Made by a program: the position numbers and the translations under genes. From Pelomyxa schiedti (taxonomy: Eukaryota; Protista; Evosea), in contig JAHLWZ010000431.1 in NCBI GenBank assembly GCA_020536535.1, positions 1-45,597 on the forward strand: a stretch of DNA of 45,597 nt, in the 5' to 3' direction. Position 1 is the first letter of the stretch. Each line of letters opens with the position of its first letter. Of the stretch, positions 3,132 to 34,800 are shown in pieces. The notes beneath the pieces were generated by a model. It had not been told where the DNA came from. It worked only from the letters and a program-made list of their open reading frames with translations, and made no database searches.

Positions 3132-5393
3132 ATGTCACACGGGGTTGCGTCGCACGGGCTGCCGCCGGCACCGTTGTTGGGGGCTGATGCGTATGTGTTG
3201 CGGTTGGAGCAGATGAGGAGATCTGCGTTCCCCGATGAGAAGGACTCGAAGCCAGGTTGGTCCCATAACCCCTTCGTTCCAACCCCCGTCCCCGCTGCCC
3301 TTGTTTTGGTGGTGTTTTTTTTTAATTTTTTCCCCCGGGAGTCCCGTTTCCTCCTGCTAAAATGGTGATAGTTTTGTTTTTTTTTGGTTTGTTGGTTTGT
3401 GTGGACATGGAATTTCCTTGGTCTAATGCCAACACACACAACCAAAGTAATAGTAGTCAATTCTGAACGAAATGTACAGAGAGGTACCGCCCCAACCACA
3501 AGGTTCTCGTATACCAGAGCTTCGCCGACGAAATTGCCATGCGGCAGCGTCACAAGGCTGAGGCTGCTGCCCATAGACGCGATAAAACCGAGAGTACCAG
3601 TGCTGCAGCTCCGAAGCCCACTGATAAGAGGCCCTCTGGTAGGCACGGACTGTTTGCTGACACTCGGAGTGAATCGATAGTACCAAAGACGTAAGCCTCT
3701 ATTCTTTTCCTTTTTATTTGGCAGTCCACCTCTCCCAGTGATTAACTAGCTTCTAAAAAAGGACACCGGTGGTTGTAAATGATTCAACTTCGACTGCACA
3801 AAAGAGAGCTATAAGGCCAGCTGAAATTGTATTCTCTACAATTAAGACAGGTACGCGAGTATTAAAATGTTGGCATATTATCTCATTTTGCATAAGATCC
3901 CGTTGAAGAGGAAAAACTTTCACAAAATCTGGAACAATGTACCTCACACTCTTATTCTATCTCCATTTAAATCAAATCTTTAGTGCAAGTGCAACCAGAA
4001 GAAACCCCGATTGTCTCTACTACCACTATAACCACTGCTGCCAGTGTAATGAACGAAAGTGAGGAACTGGAACTTGAAGAAAAACGTAGAAGGGCACGGG
4101 AAAAGGCCCTTGCCAAAGTTAAGATGGAAGAAGAAGCCCAACGAAACCTGACTGATACTACTCACGATGAAGTATTTGCCGTTCTTGGACCATCAACATA
4201 AAATAACATAACTTAAGGAGGAAGAAACCGAATCTAAGAAGATTATTTCTGTTGAAGATGCTGAAGATGCCAATGCTGATGCAGAAGATGAAGATGAAGA
4301 GGAGGAGGAAGAAGAGGAGGAGGAAGAAGAGGAAGAGGAAGAGGATGATGAGACATGGCCAATGCATCCAACAGTACAACCAATTTTCGTTGCCAAGTAT
4401 GCACAACCTTGAATTCCCTGAGTATTAATATGTGTAGGACTGATAGAGCTACTATTAAAGAGCGTGAAGCCCTTGAAGCAGAAGAAGAGAGACACCTAGA
4501 AGAAGAGAAAAAAAGAGCTGCTGAATTACAGCAGGAGGCCAAAGAACTCCTTGTGAAAACCCTAGAAATGGAAAAAATTATGGAGAAAGCGGAAGTTGCC
4601 TGTAAGTTCTCCCACAAAAAAAGAGATAGAAACTAATGGACTGGTAGCATCTGATGAGGAGATTCCATCTGACCCGGAGCAGACAGAAGAACAAGAATTT
4701 GAAATGTGGAAGAAGCGTGAGATGGATCGCATCAAAATGGAAAAGGAAGAAAGAGAACAGTTAGTTACTTCTACGCATTCTCCAATTTCTCACATAATCC
4801 TAGATTTTCAAGAGATAAGACAGAACTAGAAAGAGAACGTTGCCAGGCTACACCAGACACCAGTGCCGCAAACCAACACGAACATAAAAAGTGGAAGTTC
4901 TTGCAGAAATACTATCACATTGGTTCCTTCTTCAGGTGAATTTCTTCCTCCTTTGCCACCAATCTTATGCACATGTTATCAGAGATGAGGGAGAAATGGA
5001 TGTTGCTATGGGAAAATGGGACTTCAATGAACCCACTGGCCAAGACAGAGAAATCAGTGACAAGAGTGCATTACCCAAAGTTCTCCAAGTCAAGGTTCGT
5101 TTCCTTTTTCCTGCTTCGAAGTTATTCACTTTTTCATAAACAGAACTTTGGAAGAAGTGGACGCACCAAATACACACATTTGATGGACCAAGATACCACT
5201 GATTGGAATTCTCCCTGGTCCGTCAATGACACGGTTCGGCAAGCCTATGTTCAGAAAATGGGCGGCGTTGCTGAGTATGTTATCTGTAACCGCTATTCCA
5301 TCCCGGTTCTAACTGTTCCTTCTTTTGTGTAGCAAGGCACCACCCCCAACACAGAAAAAGAGAAAAGTGGATGCTCCCGGTCAATCAAGCTGA
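3132..5393 (+). CDS. MFAP1: Microfibrillar-associated protein 1 / Spp381-like spliceosomal B-complex protein, multi-exon
   Basis: Poly-Glu tract, then [78 protein letters not shown]: the conserved MFAP1 C-terminal domain. N-terminal exons less certain. Confidence 0.92.
4285..4352 (+). repeat. (GAR)n trinucleotide tract encoding poly-Glu/Asp in MFAP1
   Basis: Run of gaa/gag/gat codons seen directly. Confidence 0.85.
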
Positions 5394-15604: not shown

Positions 15605-15771
15605 CTGATTTTCCTCGAATCAAGGTCACGTGCACAGCAATATATCAGGAATTACCTAAAGGTTTTGGCAGAAGAATGGTAGTTCTACTAACTTCAGATT
15701 GTGGCTCTGAAAACCCTGGTCCGATTCCAGGTGCCTCTCTTTTTGATTTCTGTGAACTATTAATCACTAAG

Positions 15772-17433
15772 ATGCAGGAGGCCCTGGCACGACATGGTTT
15801 GGAGGCACTCACGTCGTTCGGGGCGGGCGACTACGTGTCCGAGCTCCATTGCCTCTTTTTGCTTATGGGTGGTGGCTCACCTGACGAATTCGACATCAAC
15901 ACAATCGGCCTCAACAACAACAACACCTCTGGTTCTTATGCTAACTCACTTCCAGCCTCAAAAAGTGGTCGTTCTGATGCCTCAGACAACGCCACTGTCA
16001 CTAATGCAGCAACAAAGTGCTGTTGTGAGGTGGGAGTGATGGAGGAGGAACCACTGCCAGGAAAGGCACTTGGCCTGGTCCTTCTGAGGTACACCTACAG
16101 CAACAACCCTGAAATGTTCAGTCACCAAAGGCCGCATTCAGAATACATGCTGGATGCGTTGTTGGAGAGAGCAAAGAAGTGCAGTGGTGTGTGTCACAGG
16201 TTCATGAACGAGGTGCTGGACAGGGCATGCGATGTGAAGGTTGTTGATGTGGATGTGGATGGTGGCAAGTCGAGGGCTCTGTTCTGTGCTGGTCACTTCA
16301 TAAAGGGTTCTCTGCTGTTCAGGGGCCTTGGGATCGAGGAGGATTTCAAAGGGTGTGTGGCTCACATGAGGGCATGTGAGCCTTATCAATTTGCTTTGGC
16401 ACTGAACACGATTGGGCTGTGCTATGAAAAAGGGAAAGGTGTGGAAAAAGATGTGGGGAAATCTTTTCAGTTTTACATGATGGCTGCAGTGAAAGGAGTG
16501 CTTATTGCACAGGGAAACGTGGCTATGTGCTTCTGGAATGGGACTGGAGTCGAAATGGACAAAAAAGAGGCTTTTTCGTGGTTCAAACGGAGCAGTGCTC
16601 TCCCAGTTTCATGTTCCAAGCTGTCTCATTGCTACAGAATTGGGGAAGGTGTTGACAAGGACCCCCAGGAGAGCCTGAGGCTTCTGAAGTTTGCTGCAGA
16701 GCAGGGAGTGGCAAACGCGCAGTACAAACTAGCACAACAGACAAGTGACCCAGCTGCAGCTTGGAAGCTGCTGATGTTGGCTGCGGCACAAGGGTATTCC
16801 AATGCACAGTGCGAGGTTGGAAAGGCTCTGCTTAAAGGAAAGGGTGTGGACAAGAATACAGCCGAGGCATCCAGGTACCTAAGAATGGCAGCTGCACAAG
16901 GAAACCACTTTGCATTGGCAAGACTGGCTGCCATGTATCAATACGGTGATGGAGTGCCACTGGATAACTTCGAGGCCTTCAGGCTGTTCAGCCAGTCTGC
17001 AGAGTTGGGCAACCGTGCTGCACAGAGTGAGGTGGGAAGGTGCTACTACACTGGAAGAGGTGTTAATAAGGACTACTCTTTGGCTGTGCACTGGTTCAGA
17101 AAGGGCCTTGCTAATCCAAGGAAGGGAGGCTATGGGATGGCACACAACAGTCTGGCAAGGTGCTTCAGAGACGGACACGGTGTCGCAAGGGACACAGCTG
17201 AGGCATTCAGGCTCTACAGCATGGCGGCTCTGCACGGCAACTTGATCTCTCAGTTCAATGTGGGTGTGTGCCTGGAGAACCACGTTGGCACCCCAGCCAA
17301 GGACACGAGGGAGGCAATGAGGTGGTACCGCCTGGCTGCTTCCAGGGGGAATACTCCCTCTGTTAGAAGATTAGAAAGCATCATAACCAAATCAACTCGA
17401 CGCGCACAGCAACCACAAGACGATACCATGTGA
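15772..17433 (+). CDS. Sel1-like repeat (SLR) protein, intronless
   Basis: About nine repeats of the type ALNTIGLCYEKGKGVEKD..F.FY..AA..G and AQSEVGRCYYTGRGVNKDYSLAVHWF. Start could be 15676. Confidence 0.92.
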   Translation: MQEALARHGLEALTSFGAGDYVSELHCLFLLMGGGSPDEFDINTIGLNNNNTSGSYANSLPASKSGRSDASDNATVTNAATKCCCEVGVMEEEPLPGKALGLVLLRYTYSNNPEMFSHQRPHSEYMLDALLERAKKCSGVCHRFMNEVLDRACDVKVVDVDVDGGKSRALFCAGHFIKGSLLFRGLGIEEDFKGCVAHMRACEPYQFALALNTIGLCYEKGKGVEKDVGKSFQFYMMAAVKGVLIAQGNVAMCFWNGTGVEMDKKEAFSWFKRSSALPVSCSKLSHCYRIGEGVDKDPQESLRLLKFAAEQGVANAQYKLAQQTSDPAAAWKLLMLAAAQGYSNAQCEVGKALLKGKGVDKNTAEASRYLRMAAAQGNHFALARLAAMYQYGDGVPLDNFEAFRLFSQSAELGNRAAQSEVGRCYYTGRGVNKDYSLAVHWFRKGLANPRKGGYGMAHNSLARCFRDGHGVARDTAEAFRLYSMAALHGNLISQFNVGVCLENHVGTPAKDTREAMRWYRLAASRGNTPSVRRLESIITKSTRRAQQPQDDTM

Positions 17434-17560: not shown

Positions 17561-19614
17561 TTAGTTATTACATTGGTTTTTAATCCAAGGGAATCTCATG
17601 TCCAAACTGGAGGGCTGGCCAGTGAGCAACACAGCAGTGAAGTTCTCACCGGTCACAACGTCGAGGCAGGACCCAGGCGGCACCCACGGCACAACCCCTG
17701 GAGCTTCCACTGACTTGCACATTCTGACGCCACACTCGAAGCTGGGGCAATATCCCCACGTGAACACGTCCCCCCAGCGCGTCAGCGCAGCATAGTGTTG
17801 TTTCGGCGACGAGTAGTCCGCAGCAGCACACACCTTGCACAGTGATGATGAATCGTTGTGAAGCAGTTGTTCATCTCCGGAAGATGGTGGTGGTGCGGTT
17901 GCCGTTGCTGCGAATGGGGGGTACCTCTTCTCGCTGCCGAGTTTGCTGTGGGTAACCTCCACCACACCGTGTGATGTCAACCACAGGGAGCTGGTGTGGC
18001 CGTCGGCAGCGCGCAGCACTCTCTCGCCGTCGCGGAGGCTGTGGCTGAAGAGGTTCCCGCCTTCGGATAGTTTTTGGGCACCGCCGGACTTCATTATCAG
18101 GGTCGCTGTGCCCCATGCTCCGATTCCCAGGCTCTTAACGCCGGTGGTGACTCGCCGCATGCGGCCCTGCGGTGGATTGAGTGTTGGCGGGAAAAAAGGG
18201 GGAGTTACATCGTTATGTTCTCCTGATTGCCATACAGTGCCATCCTCTGTGAGAACAACAGTATGAAACGATCTCATCTCCAGCTGTTTCACATTGGAAA
18301 ATCTCAGCTGCGTGAAGAAAGGGTATTAATAAAAGCTGAATAAGAGAACAAACAACCTGCATTATTGACAAAGGTTGACGTGCCGAGCAGAATGCCTTTT
18401 TGTTTGAATCAACTAACCCTATCGTCAATAGAAATCAGTATTGTAACTGTTCGGAGTTTGGCTGGATACCAACCAAAAGAGTGATGAGAACACGAAATTT
18501 GTCTCGGAGGCCATTTGAACGTTGATGGAAGGAGGGAGCTGATATCCTTTGGCGCATCCCCTTTGAAATCTTCACACTCATTAAATTTATTAAATTAATT
18601 GTATTATGCTTTATCTCCAAACTCACCTATCTTCAAATCACCCCAAAAGAAAAGTTGTCTTTCTGTTGTCGCAACAACCATGTGATACTGTCCGGCTCCC
18701 ATCATGATTACCTTAATTATTTTCCCCCACCCCAATCCATCCAAGGAGGTTAAAAATAAATGCAACTTGTTACCGCTTGAATACCTTGGTGTTTCCAAGT
18801 GGTGACACAGGAGAAGAGGTGTCCTCCTCTGATGGTTTTCCGAGTCTGAAACTTGAACCTCGTCCAAAAGTGAATAAAAATCTGATTTCCAAAGGGGAGT
18901 TAGGACGATAAATTCGGGAGGAAGGCAATTGTGTGGCAGCACACACCCGGGCATTCTCGGGACCCACACAGGTCTTTCCACCAAATCCCGCAACGCATCC
19001 CTTGGTGTCACTGCCATCACATTCCCATTTTCCCTGCCTCCTTCTTGTTCTCGTTGATGCGATGGGTCACCATCGCCTCGGTTTGTGGCTGTGGTGGCCG
19101 GTGGCAACAGCGAGGGAGCTGCTTCTACCCTGGACCATTCATCATCATCACCATCCTCCTCGCTGTCATCGGCTTCGTCGTGTCCACCACGGGCTGCGGC
19201 TGCCGTACCATCTCCGCCACCACCCCCGTTGTTGTTGTTGATGCTGTTGTTGTTGTTGTTTTGTTGCTCGAGCAACACGGACCAGAGCGACGACGTTGGG
19301 CTCGCGGCGAGGTCGGCCACGCGACGGCACGTGCACAAGAGTGACACGAAGTCGGAGCCAGAGCCTGGCCTGAAAGCAGCTGCGAGAATCGCGATGAGCG
19401 CCGGGTCCGGCAGTGTCGAAAACGACGCCGTTGTTGCTGTAGTTGTTGTTGCTGTGGTAGGCGGTGGTTGTTCTTCAGGCCGTGCGGTAGTGTGCGCCTG
19501 TGTGTCGGCTGGTACAATGGGTGCACCCGACCACAGGCGTGACAGGAGGTCCACGGTGCAACGATAGACGTACGACATTCTACGTTTAAACAAAGTTTCA
19601 CCAGTTGTTCTCAT
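17561..19614 (-). CDS. F-box-like + RCC1-repeat protein, copy A (apparently intact, 7 exons)
   Basis: FSTLPDPALIAILAAAF..FVSLLCTCRRVADLA..SSLWSVL (F-box-like LP..I...L..TCR..W pattern), then RCC1-type blades FTFGRG..RLG, MGAGQYHMVVAT..LFFWG, FHTVVLTEDGTVW, HYAALTRWGDVFTWG, VVTGENFTAVL. Splices cleanly with GT-AG introns. Confidence 0.8.
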
Positions 19615-19890
19615 AAGGCAGCACTAAGTGGCTGAAGAAAATAATCACCAGACGACCGGACGCTGTCATTTTCGTTATCGTCGCTCGGGATCGGCGGTCT
19701 GGTGTTTCTTTATTCCGCCAAGTGCCCTTTCTCCGACGTACCTTTCGGAGCACAATAACAACAATCATCCCCACCACTCAGCCACTGAAATTGCTATTGA
19801 AAATACCAATTTCAATAATATTATTGTTTATGCAGTTTTGTTGAAGTGGCACGTCGTGTGTCCCGTTCATCAATCTGGAGTGTATCACAA

Positions 19891-22800
19891 CTACAACCTC
19901 GTGGAGGAAGCAGAGATGGATGCAATGGTTGGTGAGAGTGACGACAACCACTGTGTGATGCCGACACTGACTTGGTCCTGCATGATCCCATAACCTGATC
20001 CTGATGCCGAGGAGAGGAGGGCAATGGCGGCAGATGTGCAACAACAGTGCAGAACCTGCATGATCACTGTGAATGGCACCCGGTTTATCTCTTTTTGGTA
20101 TTAGTGTTGGGTCGTTGTATTGTGATTTGTGTTGGGTTCACACACCACAAATCGAGAGGCATGACTGAACAATGAGGAGCAGGAGGTCTGGTGCGGTGCC
20201 AAGTGCAATTACTGCAGCCAAATTGGCATTGGGTGGTGCCACCAGTGAGAGAAACAGTGAGTTTGGTGAGTGGACAAGGTTCTTCACTACGTTGATGCAG
20301 GCTGTCCTCCTGCTCAGGCAGTGAGCAACAGTTGATTCTGTGGCCTCATGGCAGAGCCTGTTCACCTCTGCGGTTGTGGTGTAGTTTTGGGGGTGTGAAG
20401 TGATGACTGAACACTAACCTGCAACATCGGGAACCGGAAGTGACTTCTCCTGCTCCATGAGGAACATTGTCTGTTTTGCTGGAGGCAATTTGTGGAAGGA
20501 AGAGTCAACAATTTTCCCACAGATCATTTCAGTGGTCAGAACCCCAAAGCTCCAAACATCTCCTTTGTTTGTTGTGTGGTGGGTAATAAAGGAAATGGAG
20601 AACAAAACAAACCTTTTGATGTGTAATGCTTGGTGAACATCTGAGGGGACATGTAAACCAGTGTTCCTGGTCTATGGGTGCGGGTCTGTTGCACATTTGA
20701 AATAACTTGACTGGTTGTCCCACATGAGACACCTTTTTTGACTTGACATTAGCGTTGAAACACCAGGGAAGAAATGGATGTAATAATACCAAAATCACAG
20801 ATTTTTGGTGTTCCCTCAGCATCCAAAAGGATGTTGTTGCTACTCAGGTCTTGGTGCATATATTTTTGTCTGTGTCACAGCCAGAGGAAAGAGGATTTTT
20901 ATGACATTCATGGTAGAGAGTGAGAGAAAGACCTGTGAAGGGCATCCATTCCTTTGGCAACACCAAGTGCGATGGCTGTGACTTCTTGGAACTTCAACTT
21001 TCTCTGTTTTTCCTTGAAGTTGAAAAATGGGGGGAAAATGTAAAAAAACCCTTGCCTTGGCAAGGAGCTGTCTGAGACTGCAACACATAAGTTCAGACAC
21101 AATAAGAACTTTCCCTGATCCCGTTGTACATGTTCCAATGCACTCAACAATGTTGGGATGCCTCAAACCTCCCACAATCTGTACCGTTTTTTTTTTGTTT
21201 GATTGTTATTTTATTTCAACAAACCTCAGCTTCAAGCCTGAAACGGTCAATGTTGTAGGTTGACAGGATGGCATCGTGAAGTGACTTAACTGCAACATCC
21301 CTTGATGAAAGAAGTGTGCCTTTGAACACAGTGCCATAGCTCCCTGTTCCCAATTGTGACGAAATCTTGAGGTCTCTTTCTTGGATAGGCATCATTGGTG
21401 CGATTCTGACCATCACCTTCATTTGTGGTTCTGGATGTGTGTGAGATCGTCTCTGGGGTGGTTATGAGAAAACCTGAGCGAAGCAGAAGGTGTGACAATG
21501 TTGAAGATGTTCCAGAGAGGGTGATTTCAGTTGTCTCCTCCGAATTTGGGTTGTGTACAACAACAGATACAACTTGGTGGTTTTCAGCAACTCCAAACCG
21601 CTTTTCAATTTCCATTTTCACAATCTTTTCATTGTTTTTTTATTGTTTTGTTAATGTGAGTGAGATAATGTGTTAATGTGTGAAGTTGGAACAAAACCTT
21701 ATCAAAGGGGCACAGACTGCAGAAGGAATCTTGAAATGTGATGTTGGGTTTCTCCAAAGTGACTAAAGCATCCTTCATTGTAGTGTTGTTCTCTCTTTGG
21801 TTTGTCGCTGGTTGGAAAGTGGATTTAACCCAAGACCCCTGTTGAATGTGCTTCAGAACGTGGTCAAGGCCTTGATTGTTGTGTCAGTATCTTTTATGTA
21901 CTCTAATTCAAAAACAGTCAAACTTCTTGCGCACATTCCTCTTGCTTTTTTAACTCCTCAGCTTGAAGTCTCATCACTTTTTTTTGTGGTTTGTTTGGTA
22001 AGAAAACGAATTGGTGCCATCATACATTCTGTTTGTTCATCCAGTTTCTGTTGAATGATGGTTTTTTCTGTTTGCAACCTTCGCAATTCCTCCTGGTGAT
22101 ATACCCATTAAATTACTTTGAAAGAAGAGAAAGAAACCTCCATCAGTGGGTCACCACATCCCATGTGATGGCGGAATCCCCTATTTCCATGTTCTTGGAA
22201 AACACCACTTGTCACAGTGCCTTCGAACTTGGATGTTGTTGATGAACTGTCATGGCTCTTAACTGTGGCAATACCTTGGCCCACATCATCATCTGCAAAT
22301 GTGCCAGTGAATTTGTCACCATTTGGCCACGTCATTGTGCCCGACTTGATTGCACCCATCTCCCAAACACCATCAACCACTGTCCCATCACATGCCTGCA
22401 TCCTTTCTCCTTCACCGTTCTCCTTGCCATACAGCCACTCGCCCTCGTACCTGTCACCGTTTGCCCACAGCCTCACACCCCAACCCTGGAACTTGCCATC
22501 CACCCACTCCCCGGCGTAACTGCTGTTGTCATCAAACAGCATTCTCCCATTCCCACTCTTATTGCCGTGATAAAACATGCCATGATAGATGCCACCCGAG
22601 CCGTAGCCCGTGCCACAGGTCGTTCTCCCACTCTCCCTCATACAGCACTTGCCCGCTGCCCGCTCCTTCCCTTTGCACACCCCACCCATGCATGTCGTGC
22701 CGGTTCTTTTTCTCGTTCCACACCCACTCGCCCTCCCTGACATCGTTGTCGCCGTCGCCGTCGTCCTTGTTGGGGTGCCACGTCCCCCTGGCCCACCTGT

Positions 22801-23104
22801 TGTGCCTCCACAGGCCCTCGTACCACGAGGACCCGTCGGCATCGTTCCACAGGCCCCACCCGTCCCTGTAGTAGTTGTGCCACTCGCCGTCGTAGGCCTC
22901 CCCGTCGGCCTTCTTGAACACGCCTCGGCCGTGCCACTTGTCGTCTTTCCACTCGCCGGCGTAGGTGTCGCCGCTCGGCCACGTGACTGTGCCGCCGCCG
23001 TCGCGGCTGTTGTTTACGAGGCGCCCAGTGTACGTTCCATGGGGAAACTTGCGGCCAACAACCATCGTCGCGGTTGCTCCACGAGGTGTCGCCGTTGCAG
23101 CCAT
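19891..23104 (-). pseudogene. MORN-repeat / coiled-coil / ubiquitin-like / TKL-type protein kinase with one frameshift near 22600
   Basis: MORN repeats (YAGEWKDDKWHGRG, YEGEWLYGKENGEG); kinase motifs LGTGSYGTVFKG, VAVK, HPNIV, HQDLSSNNILL, KICDFG, GTLVYMSPQ, GDVWSFG. MORN repeats are split between ORFs 22559..23539 and 22108..22842 with no plausible intron. Could be a sequence error in an intact gene. Confidence 0.8.
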
Positions 23105-23230
23105 TGTAGTATCTGCCGAGATTCGAGCTGTACCAGAGAGGCAAACCCAAAATGAATTGAGGGGATGTTGTGTGTGCGTTCGTGCGTGGAGGTAGTCTCT
23201 GGGCCCAGACACAAATTCTGAGATAAACCC

Positions 23231-24505
23231 ATGGGCAGTAATCACACCAACGGCACGAACACTCCAACAAGCACAAGACATAATCACGGACTCACCATAA
23301 CCACCCACACCTCCCCGACGGGCCCCCAGCCGCCAGAGGTGGTGAGACAGATATCGGCCGCACGCCAGTGCGTCGCGTTCCTGTGCGGCACACTTGTCGC
23401 AAGGACGAGGGCACGGTCGCCAGGCAGGCTCCTTGCCGTGTCCCCATTGCTGGTCGAGCAGTTTGGCAGGGACTGGGTTGTGCGCGAGTGCAGGGATGCG
23501 GCGTTCACTGTGGATGTGGGCGGCGGGGTCTGTCTGCACTGTATTGTGTGGGTGTCACTTACCCTGGGCGTTGTGGGGTCTGTGCAGTTTGCCACGGCGG
23601 GGCCTGAGAGGTGCCAGCTTGTCGGGTGCGTTGGTTCTTCGAGGGGAACCGGAATGGGTTGGGGTGTGGCACCTGGAGTTGGGCCCAGTGGTTGCTGCTG
23701 CAGGCTGCTGATGACGAGGACACACCGTGACAGCGGTGTGAATTCGGTTGATGTAGTGGATGGAACCCGGCTCGGTGGTGAGAAACTTGTTCCGTGGTTG
23801 TGGACCTTGTGAGCTGCAGGTCAGTTGCAACAGTAGGTGGATTGTTTTGATGGAGGCAAGTGAGATTACATTGTGGAAGCTTTGGTCTGCCCACGAGCAG
23901 GATGGGGCTGACTGTGAGTTGGACACAGAGGAGACCTGCATAAAGATACTGCTAGATACGCATCCCCTCTGTCATACTTTGCATGAGAACGACCCCGATG
24001 TTCTTCTGATGACTGTGGGCAACTCAGAGGTTTTACTGTGGCACATTGACTTGAAGGAGAGCTTTTGCAAGCGAGCAATAGTGTTCAAAAGTGATCACAT
24101 CCCAGTGCCATTTGGTAAAACTGTGCTAGGAGGTGACCCTATCTGTACTGCTCAAAGTGTAGAAGCCGACAAGTTCCACATCCATAACTCCAGAACCCAC
24201 CAAACAACAGCCATTAAAGGTGGATTCTACCCTCTGAGTGGGCACCTGTTCTCAGTCTGGAACTCCACTGAAGATTACAACAAAGTGTTGGTGTTCTGCA
24301 CTGCTGACCTCATCAGCCCTCTGTACTTTGTTGACTGCTCCACAAGAGGAGCTGACAGAGGGTTCTCACCTGTCTTCTACAAGCTGAGTTTGTACTGTGG
24401 GAAGTTGTCCCTCAAGGAACAGTGAAGCACAGGCAGAAGAAGTATGTACTAGCAGATAGTGTGACTGACACAATTTTGGCTATTGTCAACTACCCAAAAG
24501 ATTGA
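23231..24505 (+). pseudogene. 'ARDQF'-motif family member with two frameshifts
   Basis: ISAARQCVAFLCGTLVAR..SP..EQFGRDWVV. Removing one C from acccgg (~23767) joins it to ORF 23760..24425 (CNSRWIV..LWHIDLKES). A third frame gives a family-like end YVLADSVTDTILAIVNYPKD* at 24505. Confidence 0.75.
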
Positions 24506-24607
24506 CACTGGCATGGGTGGTCTGTATGTTGGCACTGTGGAAAAAATAACAGAAGTGGACCACCTGGAGCCACTTTCAAACGTTTACATCTTTTGTTTTC
24601 GCTGAGC

Positions 24608-26303
24608 TTAAAGGAGGTCAGTGCGGAGTAACACGGCAGTGAAGTTCTCACCAGTCACAACGTCGAGGCATGACCCAGGTGGAACCCACGGCACAACTTC
24701 TGGACTGACACCACACTCGAAGCTGGGGCACTGCCCCCAGTGAACACGTCGCCATCTCGTGTCAAAGCAGCGTAGTGGTGCTGCATGGGTTCACAGTAGT
24801 CCGCGCCAGCGCACACCTTGCACAGTGCGTCGATGTGGCGCGGGAATCGGAAGTAAGTCATGTCGTGGTCGGGGTTGCTGGGGTGCACTTCCATCAGGCT
24901 CTGTGATGTCAACCACAGCGACGGTATGTTGCCGTCTGCGGCGCGCAGCACTCTCTCGCCGTCGCGGAGGCTGTGGCTGAAGGTCTGCCCTCCTTCGGCT
25001 AGTATTTGGGCACCGCCGGACTTCATTATCAGGGTCACTGTGCCCCATGCTCCGGTTCCCAGGCTCTTAACGCCAGTCGTGACTTGCAGCATGTTTTCCT
25101 GTTTTCAGTTGATTGGAAATTGGTGATTGGGCAATGACATAACATAGGTTCCCTCATTTGTTTGCCACACAATTCCACCCTCAGTGAGAATAACAATGTG
25201 AAACAATCTCAGCTCCAGCTGTTTCACATTGGAAACGCTCAGCTGGCATCAGTATTAATTATGTTAGCTAACATAAAAGCAGTATTATGATGAAATGAAG
25301 AAACCTGTATTATTGACAAAGGACCACGTGTTGAACAGAACGCCTTTTGGTTTGAATCAATCAATCCTGAGTTCGCAGTCAGTCTCTTGTGTTTGGTGGA
25401 TTGGAGACCAACCAAAAGAGTGATGAGAACACGAAATATGTCTCGGAGGCCATTTGAACGTTGATGGAAGGAGTGAGCTTACGTCCTTTGGTGCATCCCC
25501 TTTGAAATCTTCACACTCATTAAATTAATTTAACGAGGTTGCAGTTACGCGCTCACCAATGTCCAAATCACCCCATAAGAAAAGTTGTCTTTCTGTTGTC
25601 GCAACAACCATGTGATACTGTCCGGCTCCCATCATGATCACCTGAATTATTATTCCCCCCCACCCCAATCCATCCAAGGAGGTTAAAAACAATGCAACTT
25701 GTTACCGCTTGAATACCTTGGTGTTTCCAAGTGGTGACACAGGAGAAGAGGTGTCCTCTGATTGCTTTCCGAGTCTGAACCTTGAACCTCGGCCAAAAGT
25801 GAATAAATATCTGTCCCCGACTTAGAGGAGTAATTTACCAACAACAATAGCACACACCCAGGCCTTCTAGGTACCCACACAGGTCTTTCCACCAAACGTC
25901 GCAGCACATCCCTTGGTGTCACTGCCATTCCATTTCCATTCCAATTGCTGTCCCCAGAGTTTTGGCATTCACTGGTTTCCACACCATTGTCATTGTTGTA
26001 TTGCTCAAGCAAGACGTACCACAGCGACGACGTGGGGCTAGCGGCGAGGTCCGCAAAGCAACGGCACGTGCACACAAGAGACACAAAGTCAAACCCACAC
26101 CCGGACCTGAAGGCCGCCGCGAGAATCGCGACGAGCGCAGGCTCGGGCAGCATCGAAAACGACGCCGTAGTCGTTGTCCCCATGGTGGTTGTGGGTTTCG
26201 TCGCCGTACCGGGAGGCGTTGTAGAGGGCCACAAACTCGACAACAATTCGACGTATCGGATGACACTCGACATTCTTTTCTTGGAAGCCACGATGGTGCC
26301 CAT
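24608..26303 (-). pseudogene. F-box-like + RCC1-repeat copy B, 1-nt deletion near 24739
   Basis: Same exon set as copy A. FTWGQC of the paralogs reads FTGGSA; correcting one base restores PWVPPGSCLDVVTGENFTAVLLRTDLL*. Confidence 0.8.
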
Positions 26304-26381
26304 TTCCCTAATTTCTGGTTTTTTTGTTCCTGGTAGTTACAACAGAAGAGGGAACGAGGCCTACTATAACATGTTTTTTCT

Positions 26382-28061
26382 TCAAGATAAGCCTGTATGG
26401 TTGACGGTTAGTAACACAGCAGTGAAGTTCTCACCAGTCACAACGTCCAGGCATGATCCACGTGGAACCCACGGCACAGCCCCTGGAGCTTTCACTGTTC
26501 CGCGGTTGGGCACACCACACTCGAAGCTGGGGCACTGCCCCCACGTCAGCACATCGCCATCACGTGTCAATGCGGCATAGTGCTGTGTTGGTTCAGTGTA
26601 GTCGGAACCAGCACACACCTTGCACAGTGCAAGATCATGGTGGCTGTGCAGTTGTTCACAGGCAGGTGGTGTGGTTGTTTCCGTTGCTGTTTTTGTGTTG
26701 AATGGGGGGTACCTCTCTTCTTCGAGGTTGCCCTGATTCACCTTCACCACACCGTGTGATGTCAACCACAGGGAGCTGGTGTTGCCGTCGGCAGCATGCA
26801 GCACTCGCTCACCGTCGCGGAGTCTATGCTTGAGGAGGCCACCATCTTCAGAAAGCATTTGTGCAGTGCCGTACCTCATTATCAGGGTCACCATGTCCCA
26901 TGCTCCAATTCCCAGGCTCTTCACATCAGTTGTGACTTGTTGAATGGGTATAAAGGGAAAGAGATCCTCAGTTGTTTGCCACACAGTGCCATTCTCAGTG
27001 AGAACAACAGTGTGAAACGCTCTCATCTCCAGCTGTTTCACATTGGAAAGGCTCATCTATCATGAAGAGTGTTAATAACTGAACAGCAGACAACATGACA
27101 CACTTGTTGAATTGAAAAAGGTGGCTCTGAAGTGCGGAATGCGTTTTTGTTTGCATCAACCAATCCTGAGTTTGTTGTCAGAGTGCGCGGTTGGGGTGTG
27201 AGCGGAACAAACCAAATGAGTGATGAGCACACGAAATTTGTCTTGGAGGCCACTTGAACTCTGATGGAAGCATAGATGTGATGTCTCTGGGCCCATCTTC
27301 AAAATCACCCATGGTTAAATCACCCCACAAGAAAAGTTTTTTTTCTGTTGTGGCAACGACCATGTGATACTCTCCAGCTCCGATCATGAATACCTGCACA
27401 CACAAGTTAAGTGCAGTTGTCACTTGAGTCTTGAAATGTGGCATTTACCTTGGTGCTGTTTCCAAGTGGCGACACAGGAGAGGCTGTATCCTGTGATGAT
27501 TTTCCAAGTCTGCCCCTTGAGCCTCGTCCAAACGTGAACAAGTAGCTGTTTAAAACATTAGCCCACATAATGCAACTCAAAAATTTGAGTGATAGTGGAC
27601 ACACACCCAGGCCTTTTTGGGAGCCACACAGGGCGTTCCACCAAATCCCGCAGCACATCCCTTGGTGTCACAACCACCACCCCAACCCCATTTCCATTTC
27701 CAGTGCTGTATTCACTGGTGGCTGGCACATCAGTCTCAAGTCCATTGTCATTGCTGTATTGCTCAAGCAACACGTACCACAGCGGCGCCGTGGGGCTCGC
27801 GGCGAGGTCAGCAAAGCAACGGCACGTGCACACAAGAGACACAAAGTCAAACCCACACCCGGACCTGAAGGCGGCCGCGAGAATCGCGACGAGCGCAGGC
27901 TCGGGCAGCATCGAAAACGACGCCGCAGTCGTTGTCGCCATGGTGGTTGTGGGTTTCGTCGGTGCCATGTCGATGTGTTTGGTGTGCCGAACTGGGGGTG
28001 TTGTAGAAGGTGACCATAAACTCGACAGCAATTGGACTCCGTGTCGGATGGCACCGGACAT
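26382..28061 (-). CDS. F-box-like + RCC1-repeat protein, copy C (apparently intact, 5 exons)
   Basis: FSMLPEPALVAILAAAF..TCR..LW; YLFTFGRGSRGRLG; VFMIGAGEYHMVVAT; last exon is ORF 26382..27056. Splices in frame. Confidence 0.82.
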
Positions 28062-28094
28062 CTTTTTTGATCAAGCTTTTTTTTTTTAAAGAGC

Positions 28095-29751
28095 TTAAAG
28101 GAGGTCAGTGCGGAGTAACACGGCAGTGAAGTTCTCACCGGTCACAACGTCGAGGCATGATCCACGTGGAACCCACGGCACAACCCCTGGAGCTTCCACT
28201 GCAGTGCACATGGGCACACCACACTCGAAGCTGGGGCAATCGCCCCACGTGAACACGTCGCCGTGGCGCGTCAGTGCAGCGTACTGCTGTGTTGGTTCAG
28301 TGTAGTCCCCACCAGCACACACCTTGCACAGTGCATGTTCTTGGGTGCTGTGCCGCTGTTCACAGGCAGTTGGTGTTGTTGTTGCGGGTGGGGGGTACCT
28401 CTTCTCGTCTGCGAGGTTTCTCTGGTTCACTTCCACCACACCGTGTGATGTCAACCACAGGGATTTGACGTTGCCGTCAGCAGCATGCAGCACTCTCTCA
28501 CCGTCGAGGAGGCTGAAGAGGTCGCCATCTTCAGAAAGTAGTTGGGCACCGCCGGACTTCATTATCAGGGTCGCCATGTCCCATGCCCCAATTCCCAGGC
28601 TCTTCACATCAGTTGTGACTTGTTGAATGGGTAAAAAGGGAAATGTCAGCTTCTTTGTTTGCCAAACGGTGCCATCATCAGTGAGAACAACAGTGTGAAA
28701 CGCTCTCATCTCCAACTGTTTCACATTGGAAAGACTCATCTGGAAGAGTGTTAATAACTGAACAGCAGACAACATGACACACACCTGTTTTATTGACAAA
28801 GGTACCTCTGATGAGCAGAATGCGTTTTTGTTTGAATCAACCAATCCTGAGTTTGTTGTCAGCGTATGTGGGTTGAGGTGTGGGCAACCGAATGAATGAT
28901 GAGCACACGAAATTTGTCTTGGAGGCCACTTGAACTCCGATGGAAGCAGTGATGTGATATCTATGGGCTCATCATTGTTCTCAATCATGGACAGATTACC
29001 CCACAAGAAAAGTTTTTTTCCTGTTGTGGCAACAACCATGTGATACTCTCCAGCTCCGATCATGAATACCTGCACACACAAGTTAATAATAAATATTTAT
29101 TAGTGCAGTTCCCACTTGAGTCTTGAAATGTGGAATCTACCTTGGTGCTTCCAAGTGGCGACACAGGAGAGGCTGTATCCTGTGATAATTTTCCAAGTCT
29201 GCCCGCTGATCCTCGTCCAAATGTGAACAAGTAGCTGTTTAAATCTTAAATATTAGCCGACGGGATCGGTTTTCCCTCAAAGTAGTAATATTTATTATTA
29301 ATGATTATTATAATAGATCGAGTGTTACACACAGACACAACCAATAACAACAGCACACACCCGGGCATTTTTGGTACCCAAAAGGGGCGGGCCATCAAAT
29401 CCTGCAGTGCATCCCTTGGTGTCACCGCCATCACATTCCCATTTCCATTTCCCCTGACTCCTTCTTGTTCTTGTTGTTGTTGGTGTGACGATGTTCCTCG
29501 GTAGCTCACATCATTGCTGTCGGATCTGCCAACGAGTCCGCGCCTTGGTATTCCGCCAGCAACACGCACCACAGCGACGACGTTGGGCTCGTGGCGAGAT
29601 CGGCGACGCGTCGGCACGTGCACAAGAGTGACACGAAGTCGGAGCCAGAGCCTGGCCTGAAAGCAGCTGCGAGAATCGCGAGGAGTGCCGGGTCCGGCAA
29701 CGTAGAAAACGACGTTGCAGCATTACTCTCTGCCGTTGTTGCGGTGGACAT
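28095..29751 (-). pseudogene. F-box-like + RCC1-repeat copy D, frameshift in exon 1 (~29510-29560)
   Basis: F-box-like segment lies in ORF 29506..29760 but the conserved VTPRDAL..RP.WVPK.PG lies in ORF 29246..29623 (other frame); RCC1 exons intact (28095..29081). Confidence 0.78.
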
Positions 29752-29858
29752 CTGGCACAACCGTTAGTTGCTTTTTAACGTTTCGAATTTGATTGATGGG
29801 AAAGAAGCTGTTTGGCGCTGTTGTTTACCATGGAACACTCCAGGGGCAGATCGAGAGT

Positions 29859-31524
29859 TCAGAGATTTTTCTTCAAACGAAATAGATGCAGGTCCAAGGG
29901 CTTGTTCACGTTTAGTAACACAGCAGTGAAGTTCTCACCAGTGACAACGTCGAGGCATGACCCACGTGGAACCCACGGCACAACCCCTGGAGCTGCCACT
30001 ACCCTCGTTCTTACACCACACTCGAAGCTGGGGCACTGGCCCCAAGTGAACACGTCCCCACAGCGGGTCAGTACAGCGTAGTGCTGTGTTGGCTCCGCGT
30101 AGTCCGCGCCAGCACACACCTTGCATGGTGCACTATGCAAGGCAGGCGGTGGTGTCGTTGTTGCTGCTGGTGGTGGTGTTGTTGCCGCGAATGGGGGGTA
30201 CCTCTTCTCGAAGGAGTCGAGGTTGTTGTGGTTCACCTCCACCACACCGTGTGATGTCAACCACAGGGATCTGGGTTTGCCGTCGGCAGCACGCAGCACT
30301 CTCTCGCCGTCGCGGAGGCTGTGGCTGAAGAGGTTCCCGCCTTCAGATAGTTTTTGGGCACCGCCGGACTTCATTATCAGGGTCACTGTGCCCCATGCTC
30401 CGGTTCCCAGGCTCTTAACGCCAGTTGTGACTTGCCACACAGTGCCATCATCAGTGAGGACAACCGTGTGAAACGCTCTCATCTCCAGCTGTTTCACATT
30501 GGAAAGACAGATCTGGAAGAGTGTTAATAACTGAACAGCAGCGGACATAACTTAGATAACGAGACACACCTGGTTTATTGACAAAGGTCGCTCTGATGAG
30601 CGGAAGGCTTTTTTGTTTGAATCAACCAATCCTGAGTTTCCTTGTCAGAGAGGAGTTGGGGTGTGAGTGGATACCAACCAAATGAGTGATGAGAGCACGA
30701 AATTTGTCGTGGAGGCCACTTGAACTCTGGTGGAAGCAGTGATGTGATATCTCTGGGCCCAACATTGGTCTCACCCATGTTTAAATAACCCCACAAGAAA
30801 AGTTTTTTTTCTGTTGTGGCAACAACCATGTGATACTGTCCGGCCCCCATCATGAATACCTGCACACACAAATCAACATGACTTGAATAGGAAATATCTA
30901 CCTTGGTGCTGTTTCCAAGAGGTGACACAGGAGAGGCGGTATCCTCTGAAGATTGTCCAAGTCTGCCCCGTGAACCTCGTCCAAACGTGAACAAGAACCT
31001 GTTTAAATGTTAGTTACGTGGTTATCCCAATTTAATACAGCTATAGTTGCGCCACGACTGCGCTCCACATTTTTCATTAAACCTGTGTGTGACACACACA
31101 GACACACCCGGGTGTTTTTGGGAACCACACGGGGCGTTCCACCAAATCCCGCAGCGCATCCCTTGGTGTCACAACCACCATCCCATTCCCATTTCCCCCA
31201 CTGGCTTCCTGTTGTTGTTGTTGTGATGAATCGCAATGGCATCGGGTGGTGGTGCAAGATGACGGTTCTCCGCAATCGATTGCGATGAGGCTGCCGTGTA
31301 TCATCGAGTAGGCGCCGGTGCACTGTTGCTGCTCCGTCTGACTCGAAAGCAGCGGCGAGAATGGCGATGAGTGCCGGCTCGGGCAACGTCGAAAACGTTG
31401 TTGTTTCGGTGGTACTACTCGAAGAGGGTGCCGGCAGTTGCTCTGGAGGCGGTGCACCGGTTGTTGTACCCACGAGCACAGTGGGTTCTTCCCGTACTGG
31501 TTTTAAACGGTAACGAGAAGACAT
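29859..31524 (-). pseudogene. F-box-like + RCC1-repeat copy E, frameshifting deletion of the F-box core
   Basis: FSTLPEPALIAILAAAF is followed directly by (other frame) EQQQ..VTPRDALRDLVERPVWFPKTPG; the FVSL.CTCR..LW block is missing. RCC1 exons intact. Confidence 0.78.
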
Positions 31525-31815: not shown

Positions 31816-34800
31816 ATGTCACAAGGGTACGGGGACTACTACGACGACGGCACGGGCGCGTCGGGTTCGTCGGCATACGGAGGATCCTACGACGACTACT
31901 CCTCCTCCTCCGCCTACGACGACTCCTACTCGTCCCCCCAACAACAGGCCCCACCACCTCCACCACCCACAACAGCCACACCCACATCACCCGCTACCAC
32001 CCCCACCACCACCACGACAACTCCTCCTCCGCCTCCACCACAACACCCACCGGCGATGGCATCACCAACATTGGCGGCCCCGCCCCCGCCACGCCCCTCG
32101 CCTCCATCCCTATCTCCATCACCATCACCGTCGCATACACCGCCCAATCTCAATCCCACTCCCACTCCGACCACGGCCACGCCGACGGCGGCGGCGGTCG
32201 CTCCCACGGGGCCGCCTGCTCAGCCGGCACCAAAAGTGGGGGTGCCACCTGTGACCACCACTGCAAGAGGGAGAGGTTGTGCGCGTGTGTGCGTGCGTGT
32301 GACTGTGCGTGCGCGTGTGTGTAGTACTTGTTTGGCTGTTGTTGTTTTGTTGTTTTGTTGTTGTTGTTGCTGTTGTGGCTATTTATATTTCGAACGTGAA
32401 AATGTGTGTACTTATGCACTTACATTCACAAACGAACAGCACCCCCGGCGCTGATGACACCCAATCGTCTGTCATTGTCTGGGGCACAGTTCCAAGCTTT
32501 CAGACAGGCGGGCGTCATGCCACCCTCAGTTGTTCTCACCAACCCACCCAGTCGCCCTCCGCTGTCCCGCGGCCCTCCCCCGCGCGCGGCGCCTCCCGCG
32601 CGGAGTGCTGTCCAGCCCCCTTCTCCCGCTGTAATTCCTCCTCATACTACTGCTGATTCTACGCCTACTCCTAGTCCTGTTACTAGTTCCGACCATGGAA
32701 ATGATGAATACGGCAGCAGCGCAGCTACTCCCCCTCCTCATCGGCCTGTCACAACGTCTCTGCCTCCCCGCTTGCCTCCAGGGACCCGCGCCCCTCCTGG
32801 CACTGACACTGCCAGCAGACCACCGGTAGGCCCACCAGGCATCTGTCAAAGAGGGAGAATTGGGGCCCCAAAAGTTCCCACAGACCAGGAAACTTCCACT
32901 AATACACCCCCGGAGCAAGCCGCACCGCTTCCCACACGAGAACGATCCAACTCCAACCCAACACCTCCAGGTATCGCAGCAAATATTTCAGCTTCACCTA
33001 CAACACCAAGTGCTGAGCATACTGATCTCCCTCCTGATATTGGACCGCCACCTCCTCCCCCTGAATCACATGTAGATATTCCTCCCCCCACAGCGAGTGT
33101 CGAAATTCAAGTTCAGCCCCCTTCACACAAAGATGCAGCGTCTCCTCTTGTAAATTCTACCCCAGTCAGAGGACCTCCTCAACGTACCGCTTGTGGTCCC
33201 CCTGGCTCGCAGAATAAATCTGGACCCCCAATTAAATCAGTGATTTACAAGCCAGTGTCAATTGGTGGTGGCCCCCCTTCGAGAGGTCCTCCTTCACGTT
33301 TACCCACAATGCCCACCTCACCTCAACTCCCAACCACAATTCCTGCACCAGTTTCCAATACCGATGCTTATGGTGGCTATGGTGACTATGGTGACTTCAA
33401 TGCTTCTTCAACCGCTGATTATGGGTATGGAGGTTCGGACAACCTCTCTGTTACCCCTTCTCTCACAACACCACCTTCACTACCAAGTACTACCTCTCAG
33501 GAGCCTTCATTACCTTCAACTACATGTGAAAAGGGACCGCCTACATCTGAAACAACATCTTCCACAACAGAATGCACTGCCTCCCCGCCTTCACCAAAAC
33601 CTCTGCCACTTTCAGGTCCTGCAAGCAATCCGCCTGCCAAAAAAGGGCCTCCAGCTAGAGCTACATCAACCCCTGTGCAGCAAACCACAGCTACCATGGC
33701 TCCAACAACACCAGATGGGTACAATGATAGCACCAATGGAGTTGGTGACACCAATAGTTATGATTTGTACAACTATGACTCCTCTAGTGGTGCCAACTAC
33801 GGTGGATATGGAGACGGAAATTATGGCTCTGGTGATTCAAGTTACGGGTCCAACTGTGGCGAGAATACCACTAGTTCCTATGGGCAAGTAGGGCATTCAA
33901 TGACTGACTATGGCACTGTTACAGCCCCAACTATAGTACCAAAAATGATACCCACAATAAACTCACGACCCCCGAGTTTGACCCCCGTTCTACTTGCAAA
34001 GCGTAGCACATCACCCGGAAGTACAACTGTAACCACCAGGAATCCACCAAACAGGCGCGCCTCAATGCCGGCCGAGGTTTTAGCGGCTGAATTAGCAAAA
34101 GCACACTCCCTTTCACCACCATCGAGTCCCGCCATACCAGCGACTAAGCCCCCTGTGACTGCCACAAGTGGCAGCTCTCTACTTCCCGGACTACCCAAAA
34201 ATCCAACTGCTCCAACTCCAGCTTGTAAAGCGGGACCCCCAGCACGCAGAGCGTCTATTGCCTTGGATACATCTCTCAACAGACCCAAAAGCTGGGGACC
34301 ATATGATCAAGAAGTTGCGTCCTATAACCCCAGTGAATATGGTATTTAGGCTTTATTTTAATTTTAACGTGGTTCTGAGTTTCCTTCGTAGGAGAAATAA
34401 CTCCTTCCCCTCTTGCCAATAATGAACAAGGTGTTCCACCTGACCTTCCATCAAACACAACAACCCCCTCTGGCCCTCTACCTACAGCATCCCCACCAAA
34501 CATCAACGCCATACACCCTCAGCCAAGTAACAATCCACCAACAGATGTTCCACCACCAGGTACACCAGATGCTTCCTCTAGATACCTCTTTGCTGAGCCG
34601 GACACTGCTGATAACATATGTTACCGCACTATTGGTGGGGAAACAAAATTATATGGAGCAACACTTCCCAAACTTGTAGAAAAACTTACTGATGTGACAA
34701 TACCAGGTCTCCATAACTTTTTTTTTGTTGCTCATTATGTCCAGGACCCCAATTTGTGAAATCATTCTTGCTGACATATAAATATTTCTCAAATACCAAG

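Follow-up and report, generated by a model that had tools for sequence, protein, structure and literature searches.

What are the five related genes that lie together on one contig of Pelomyxa schiedti, and what could their products do in the cell? P. schiedti is an anaerobic archamoeba, and its assembly was obtained from a single-cell genome (PMC8887013). In the present study, we analysed one contig of this assembly over its whole length of 45,597 nt (hereafter the window), in which a preliminary description had placed five F-box-like/RCC1-repeat paralogs, A to E. The five genes are real, and their coordinates, their common position on the minus strand and the head-to-tail order of B to E were all confirmed. 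The encoded protein begins with a divergent N-terminal F-box, followed by a low-complexity linker of about 25-120 residues, a conserved short helix (TPRDAL...) and an RCC1-like propeller. On computational grounds we consider it probable that this is a Pelomyxa-specific family of F-box/RCC1-like propeller proteins which serve as substrate receptors of SCF (Skp1-cullin-Rbx1) ubiquitin ligases. The features on which this reading is based are the following.

17561..19614, minus strand: gene A (part of it is Pelo_5381), with a long linker rich in N, G, D and E
19578/19614-18947, 18881-18785, 18711-18627, 18569-18474, 18418-18357 and 18307-17561, minus strand: exons of gene A, in which 18167-18208 is an optional in-frame intron of 42 nt
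19282..19422, minus strand: F-box-like segment of A (FSTLP...LW), the chain used for the Skp1 complex prediction
24608..26303, minus strand: gene B (Pelo_5384), with the exon plan of A and an obligatory 45-nt intron at 25099-25143
26019..26159, minus strand: F-box-like segment of B, its DNA 97-98% identical to that of C
26382..28061, minus strand: gene C, intact, with exons 28061-27607, 27545-27449, 27393-27213, 27165-27104 and 27056-26382
27777..27917, minus strand: F-box-like segment of C
26385..27545, minus strand: predicted seven-bladed RCC1-like propeller of C (exons 2-5), with a disordered T/P-rich insert between blades 6 and 7
28095..29751, minus strand: gene D, the open reading frame (ORF) of its F-box-like segment being out of frame with the remainder
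29569..29709, minus strand: F-box-like segment of D, over part of its length 96% identical in DNA to A
29859..31524, minus strand: gene E, propeller exons intact, N-terminus broken
26304-26381, 28062-28094 and 29752-29858, between B, C, D and E: extremely short spacers of 78 bp (B-C), 33 bp (C-D) and 107 bp (D-E)

Alignment of seven copies (A to E and two further copies, F and G, on other contigs) showed that four introns of 42-126 nt, all with GT-AG borders, are common to A-E at identical positions; in this organism introns number about 7.4 per gene and nearly all are GT-AG (PMC8887013). An extra intron of 48-57 nt lies inside exon 3 in A, B and G (18570-18626 in A, 25509-25556 in B), and the same three copies carry a GT-AG element of 42-45 nt in the loop after the motif GTVWQ (18167-18208 in A, 25099-25143 in B). 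In A and G the reading frame continues through the element, which could there be retained as coding sequence; in B the element contains a stop and must therefore be spliced. Intron presence or absence thus differs among close paralogs. In the public annotation, a word-based protein search found only four Pelomyxa entries, all called 'hypothetical protein' (Pelo_5381, Pelo_5384, Pelo_5385 and Pelo_17110), three of them on the contig of the window. Pelo_5384 (P0004) covers the full length of B but has a frame-shifted tail, Pelo_5381 (P0003) represents A and lacks the N-terminus, and Pelo_5385 (P0001) joins exons 1-2 of D to exons 3-5 of C, a chimera that could be an annotation artefact or the result of read-through and cross-paralog splicing. 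Exon references together with the database models P0001 and P0004 were used as inputs in our analysis, and exons were aligned separately so that only their statistics were summed. In place of these truncated or chimeric 'hypothetical protein' entries, our analysis offers corrected gene models, and for the products it proposes a likely function as SCF substrate receptors.

The RCC1-type blades proposed in the preliminary description were borne out by profiles, by modelling and by fold comparison. Exon pieces from four genes (A, C, D and E) scored above the Pfam cut-off for RCC1_2, and P0001 reached 34.4 bits for RCC1 (cut-off 21.7) and 44.6 bits for RCC1_2 (cut-off 22). Only one or two repeats pass Pfam, blades 3-7 are very divergent, and of the seven blades only blade 1 has the GQLG hairpin signature, with part of it left in blade 2. 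The whole-domain profile WD40_RLD (PF25390, cut-off 150 bits) stayed below its cut-off, P0001 reaching 72.8 bits and P0004 39 bits. A first AlphaFold2 (AF2) model built on eight paralog rows was unusable, with a predicted local distance difference test (pLDDT) of 51.5. The usable model was obtained with an alignment enlarged by 43 distant RCC1 proteins, and it gave a propeller with a pLDDT of 84.9, a predicted template modelling score (pTM) of 0.85 and 28 strands, which form seven four-stranded blades, the last one closed by two N-terminal and two C-terminal strands. In Foldseek, the top 50 matches of this model were all of the RCC1 family (Prp20, RCC1, RPGR, WBSCR16, HERC1/2, UVR8 and Kti13), with a best E-value of 2.4e-17, a range to 1e-11 and template modelling (TM) scores of 0.6-0.72. 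The predicted structure shows a seven-bladed RCC1-like fold for the family. In addition, an exhaustive HMMER search of 1.84 billion representatives returned two clusters at E<=1e-30, both from Pelomyxa; no non-Pelomyxa protein was found at this level and none that matched the N-terminus. The 367 hits of the same search at E<=0.001 lie nearly all on residues ~136-206, that is, on the first two blades.

The second part of the claim, that the N-terminal segment is an F-box with a Skp1 interface, was supported in silico by a predicted complex, by profile alignment and by a consistent match below the Pfam threshold. The Pfam family F-box-like (PF12937) matched over the same profile span (~1-42 of 47) in all six complete N-terminal segments. 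When aligned by hhalign with 18 bona fide F-boxes from the genome itself, the segment gave E/P 1.6e-4 over 50 columns, and the alignment covered the LP, the hydrophobic helix, the C-R and the LW of the motif. In the ESM Atlas, the neighbours of the N-terminal segment were all F-box clusters (0.88-0.75, which is below 0.9 and a lead only), and those of the whole protein were F-box+RCC1 clusters, including FBXO24, at 0.95-0.96. A hidden Markov model (HMM) made from the F-boxes of the genome itself, when run over P0004 and the distant hits, matched five distant RCC1 proteins, three of which also pass the F-box cut-offs of Pfam, and did not match P0004.

For the complex prediction, the segment of A was combined with the Skp1 of Physarum (P0123) as a stand-in, because no complete P. 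schiedti Skp1 model was found among the annotated proteins retrieved, the nearest one (P0015) being truncated and apparently mis-spliced. The genome has five or more Skp1 loci, which are split by introns, and in the two C-terminal Skp1 exons that were compared P. schiedti is 94% (36 aa) and 83% (24 aa) identical to P0123. With this partner, the complex prediction gave an interface with an interaction score (ipSAE) of 0.73, against 0.12 for the best control; of the solved complexes, 51 of 78 attain the mark for this score, and of the mismatched pairs 2 of 108. Contacts are at least 89% the same from run to run, the partner has a pLDDT of at least 76, and the predicted interface joins residues 100-164 of Skp1, in the C-terminal part to which F-boxes usually bind, to residues 2-44 of the segment. 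Genes for Skp1, cullin and an Rbx1-type RING protein are all present in the genome.

Skp1 binding of the family is thus a prediction of the modelled complex; membership in SCF is inferred, and any role of the variable loops in the choice of substrate would be so too. In the proposed mechanism, the F-box would dock on the C-terminal part of Skp1 and bring the protein into an SCF ubiquitin ligase, and the propeller would recruit the target for ubiquitination, an arrangement as in animal FBXO24. The paralogs differ mainly in the A-B and C-D loops, which would lie on one face of the propeller, and in the disordered T/P-rich insert, and segments are probably swapped among them by gene conversion.

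The ratio of nonsynonymous to synonymous substitution (dN/dS) was estimated by the Nei-Gojobori method on exon-wise codon alignments, with 95% bootstrap intervals. Over all pairs the overall ratio was 0.3-0.5; it was 0.20 (0.12-0.33) in the F-box, 0.29 (0.14-0.54) in the linker helix and 0.22 (0.16-0.29) in the propeller core. Purifying selection acts on both the F-box and the propeller core. The variable loops after GTVWQ, AADG, YPP and FECGV were found as they had been described, and B carries a 21-bp in-frame deletion in the last of them. In the loops, dN/dS was 1.00 (0.72-1.38) for all variable ones together and 1.25 (0.84-1.81) for the four named here, both intervals including 1. Short windows in which the proportion of nonsynonymous differences (pN) exceeds that of synonymous ones (pS) do exist; they are noisy and confounded by gene conversion, and pS is patchy because the genes are mosaics. 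Since the region-level intervals include 1 and pS is patchy, positive selection in the loops is not claimed.

In a four-stranded antiparallel blade, successive loops alternate between the faces of the propeller. We assigned the faces by inference from the strand order given by DSSP on the AF2 model together with propeller topology. In this assignment, the A-B and C-D loops, which follow odd-numbered strands, would lie together on a single face, here called side X, which would hold seven of the eight defined variable loops (those of blades 2-5, a pair in blade 6 and a single one in blade 7), including those after GTVWQ, AADG and FECGV. The loop after YPP, the largest variable loop, would lie on the opposite side Y as the D-A connection between blades 6 and 7; it is T/P-rich and of low complexity, has 20 indel columns and is predicted to be disordered (pLDDT <50). 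We found a pN of 0.209 (0.167-0.258) in the side X loops, 0.103 (0.070-0.139) in the side Y loops without the insert and 0.079 (0.057-0.100) in the strands. Side X as a whole has a dN/dS of 0.63, and the side Y loops KWPPR, RDGER, VPWVP and SPLG are strongly conserved. Of the 'fast-evolving variable surface' of the preliminary description, therefore, the part that stands is that variation sits in the loops and mostly on one face; the dN/dS values of 1.0-1.25, whose intervals include 1, are accounted for equally well by neutral relaxation and by diversifying selection, and the YPP loop would be on the other face.

These values bear on the best surviving alternative, in which the proteins are real Skp1-binding F-box/RCC1 proteins whose loops drift neutrally in redundant recent duplicates; the conserved face (KWPPR, RDGER, VPWVP) would then be the working surface, and there would be no variable repertoire. 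We regard this as a serious possibility, if not the one we would favour. It agrees with the loop ratios close to 1 and the 0.63 of side X, with the low-complexity, poorly predicted nature of the largest loop, with the conservation of side Y and with the decay of some copies (E, perhaps D). It accounts less well for the excess of variation on one face, which is twofold when the insert is left out, and the short windows with pN above pS also speak against it, within the limits of noise and gene conversion already given.

Several results weigh against the assignment of these proteins as SCF receptors, and these should be considered together. The F-box lies below the Pfam cut-off in every copy (best 19.1 against 24.3 bits, E 0.0011), so that the search with F-box and RCC1 profiles was affirmative for the RCC1 repeats and fell short for the F-box. 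When a profile of the segment was compared with PDB sequences, no F-box was found and only chance hits at E~0.7 appeared; the HMM from the genome's own 18 F-boxes misses P0004; and the hhalign match carries a probability of only 50%. The Skp1 in the predicted complex is not that of Pelomyxa, and where complexes of a family have already been solved a positive prediction may reproduce them, so that it speaks for likeness and not for binding. In classic SCF receptors the linker between F-box and propeller is rigid; in the Pelomyxa family it is long, flexible and of low complexity. The loop ratios, with intervals that include 1, belong here too, as does the scant sign of expression: one contig of the RNA library lies inside exon 5 of C, and no splice joint appeared in the Logan contigs.

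Part of this evidence would suit a reading in which the RCC1-like propellers have a role outside SCF, such as a GTPase exchange factor or a scaffold, and the N-terminal motif is a helical segment peculiar to the family with no more than a likeness to an F-box. Besides the sub-threshold Pfam scores, the empty PDB search and the miss of P0004, gene E would fit such a role, as its propeller exons are intact although the motif is lost. Against it stand the same Pfam span in six of six segments, the hhalign value of 1.6e-4, a Skp1 prediction that passes at residues 100-164, whole-protein Atlas neighbours that are F-box+RCC1 clusters and a segment dN/dS of 0.20. Taken together, we find this explanation rather unlikely, and an SCF receptor with a divergent F-box is the reading that we prefer.

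The paralogs are also mosaics of each other. B is 97-98% identical to C at its 5' end, 97-100% identical to A/G in the middle (exon 2-3) and 94% identical to D at its 3' end; the F-box of D is 96% identical to A; and E alternates between F-like blocks (up to 100%) and A/B-like blocks (98%). This pattern indicates, as far as sequence identity can tell, that the paralogs exchange segments by gene conversion or unequal recombination. A bolder reading would be a diversifying receptor repertoire, with one face under diversifying selection and reshuffled by gene conversion, which would direct the SCF ligase of the amoeba to changing foreign proteins, such as those of its bacterial and archaeal endosymbionts, of prey or of parasites. 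We consider that reading quite improbable, and for the host-microbe role suggested in the preliminary description the analysis gave nothing that speaks for or against it. If the variable face does select substrates, the locus would offer a workable system for receptor diversification in an endosymbiont-bearing amoeba; no result of this analysis points to such a choice of substrates.

Not every copy has kept the N-terminal segment that the preliminary description assigned to each paralog. In E, all that is left of the F-box-like motif is its first ~25 residues (31333-31407); a deletion of ~90 bp and a frame shift come next, ahead of the conserved TPRDAL motif. F, a close paralog of E, is intact across the region deleted in E. 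In D the motif is present and the frame breaks behind it, with a stop at 29506-29508 between the F-box-like motif and the remainder. A hypothetical 56-nt GT-AG intron at 29454-29509 (GTGAGC...CAG) would restore the frame of D. For comparison we used Logan contigs of three DNA runs (X1, X2 and X3) and one RNA library. In each of the three DNA runs the contigs part from the window sequence in the low-complexity linker of D and near its frame break (at 29400, 29465 and 29486), and the assembly is therefore uncertain there.

In the assembly, B is interrupted by a 1-bp gap at 24739/24740. In two of the three DNA runs (X1 and X2), the contigs have an extra C behind 24739, which restores the frame with the ancestral reading TWGQ; X3 agrees with the assembly and lacks this C. 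Because two of three DNA runs restore the frame, and because the ancestral frame downstream of the gap is open to the same stop as in D, B is probably intact. The disagreement at 24739-24740 between these DNA runs, all from one sample, reflects either an error in amplification or assembly or differences between nuclei. A contig that joins 28249-28321 (D-like) to 29916-30045 (E-like) with a few mismatches, a join that 'goes back 1797', occurs in each of the four runs (three DNA, one RNA); its source may be a further mosaic paralog or allele, or the assembly graph may have collapsed at this point. Overall, some copies are decaying, E being without an F-box and D possibly broken. That the cluster as a whole is a pseudogene graveyard left by a recent burst of tandem duplication, with no present function, is very unlikely: the deletion and frame shift in E, the frame break in D, the assembly frameshift in B, the minimal RNA evidence and the truncated or chimeric public models would favour it, but the core and F-box have dN/dS values of 0.22 and 0.20, splice sites are all conserved, A, C and the C1257 copy are intact (with a doubtful start codon in the last), and the B frameshift is absent from two of three DNA runs.

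The genome-wide copy count was made by a six-frame search with exon 5 of C as query against the assembly (G000; 52.4 Mb in 5,337 contigs). Besides A-E it found copy F on contig C1257, copy G on contig C1392 and fragments on C3779 and C2010. The flanks of F are unlike the window, and F is therefore a separate locus; the possibility that it is an allele of E was ruled out on this ground. No in-frame ATG is present in F upstream of the F-box within the open frame (L001 ~4053-4182, minus strand), and F may have a further 5' exon. The contig of G (C1392) matches the flanks of A at ~94-95% identity; C3779 corresponds to the C-B junction (95.5%) and C2010 to sequence immediately downstream of A. At ~94-96% identity, the three contigs duplicate portions of the window together with flanking sequence, among them gene A, the C-B junction and the region of the Sel1 gene, and they look like second haplotypes or very recent segmental duplicates. 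On this count the family comprises about six loci, A-E and F, in addition to the second versions of ~95% identity on small contigs. The description of the family as 'expanded' is accordingly weak, since at least 148 F-box-like matches lie above the Pfam cut-off genome-wide (of 405 first-look candidates), and judged by sequence the family is a small divergent corner of this large F-box complement.

The neighbouring genes of the window are listed below, and in none of them was a link to ubiquitination found.

15676-17433, plus strand: Sel1-repeat gene, single exon, 7 repeats, E 7e-57
~20414-21422, minus strand: protein kinase exons (Tyr/Ser-Thr type)
22108-23539, minus strand: MORN-repeat gene
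32406-34349, plus strand: P/T-rich ORF

The combination of F-box and RCC1 repeats is itself a known architecture of scattered occurrence, and the Pelomyxa family adds an amoebozoan example to those of FBXO24, haptophytes and green algae. The cluster is also a compact example in which tandem duplication, gene conversion, the gain or loss of introns and the loss of an F-box all occur within about 14 kb. A known counterpart in arrangement is animal FBXO24, which co-precipitates SKP1, CUL1 and RBX1 and promotes the degradation of MIWI (PMC10932545). FBXO24 has, like the Pelomyxa family, an N-terminal F-box followed by an RCC1-repeat domain, and its ESM Atlas cluster is among the nearest neighbours of the Pelomyxa protein (0.95). 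Sequence orthology was not found, however, as all remaining hits are confined to query residues ~136-206 or to comparable RCC1 stretches, and the Pelomyxa family differs from FBXO24 in its more divergent propeller, its tandem multiplication, its mosaicism and its long low-complexity linker. The loss of the F-box in some copies further sets it apart from the known F-box+RCC1 proteins.

The same architecture is seen in haptophyte, green algal and metagenomic F-box+RCC1 proteins. In the ESM Atlas, clusters with this pair of domains come from haptophytes, chordates and green algae, with top neighbours at 0.96. Three metagenomic proteins among the distant RCC1 hits (P0214, P0210 and P0221) pass the Pfam F-box cut-off (F-box-like and/or F-box) and have seven RCC1 repeats. 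The haptophyte, green algal and metagenomic proteins possess canonical F-boxes and RCC1 repeats, and they match Pelomyxa only at E~1e-6 and over one or two blades. As judged from sequence, the Pelomyxa family is not detectably orthologous to the known cases. RCC1/Prp20, RPGR, the RCC1-like domains (RLDs) of HERC1/2 and UVR8 share with the modelled propeller its seven blades and the 2+2 closure of the last blade, with Foldseek E-values of 1e-17 to 1e-13; they are without an F-box and have 14-17% sequence identity to it. Fbw7, beta-TrCP and the plant F-box/Kelch (FBK) families combine an F-box with a WD40 or Kelch propeller that presents one face to substrates. These receptors belong to different propeller families and have a rigid helical linker, in contrast to the long flexible linker that joins the putative F-box to the RCC1-like propeller in Pelomyxa.

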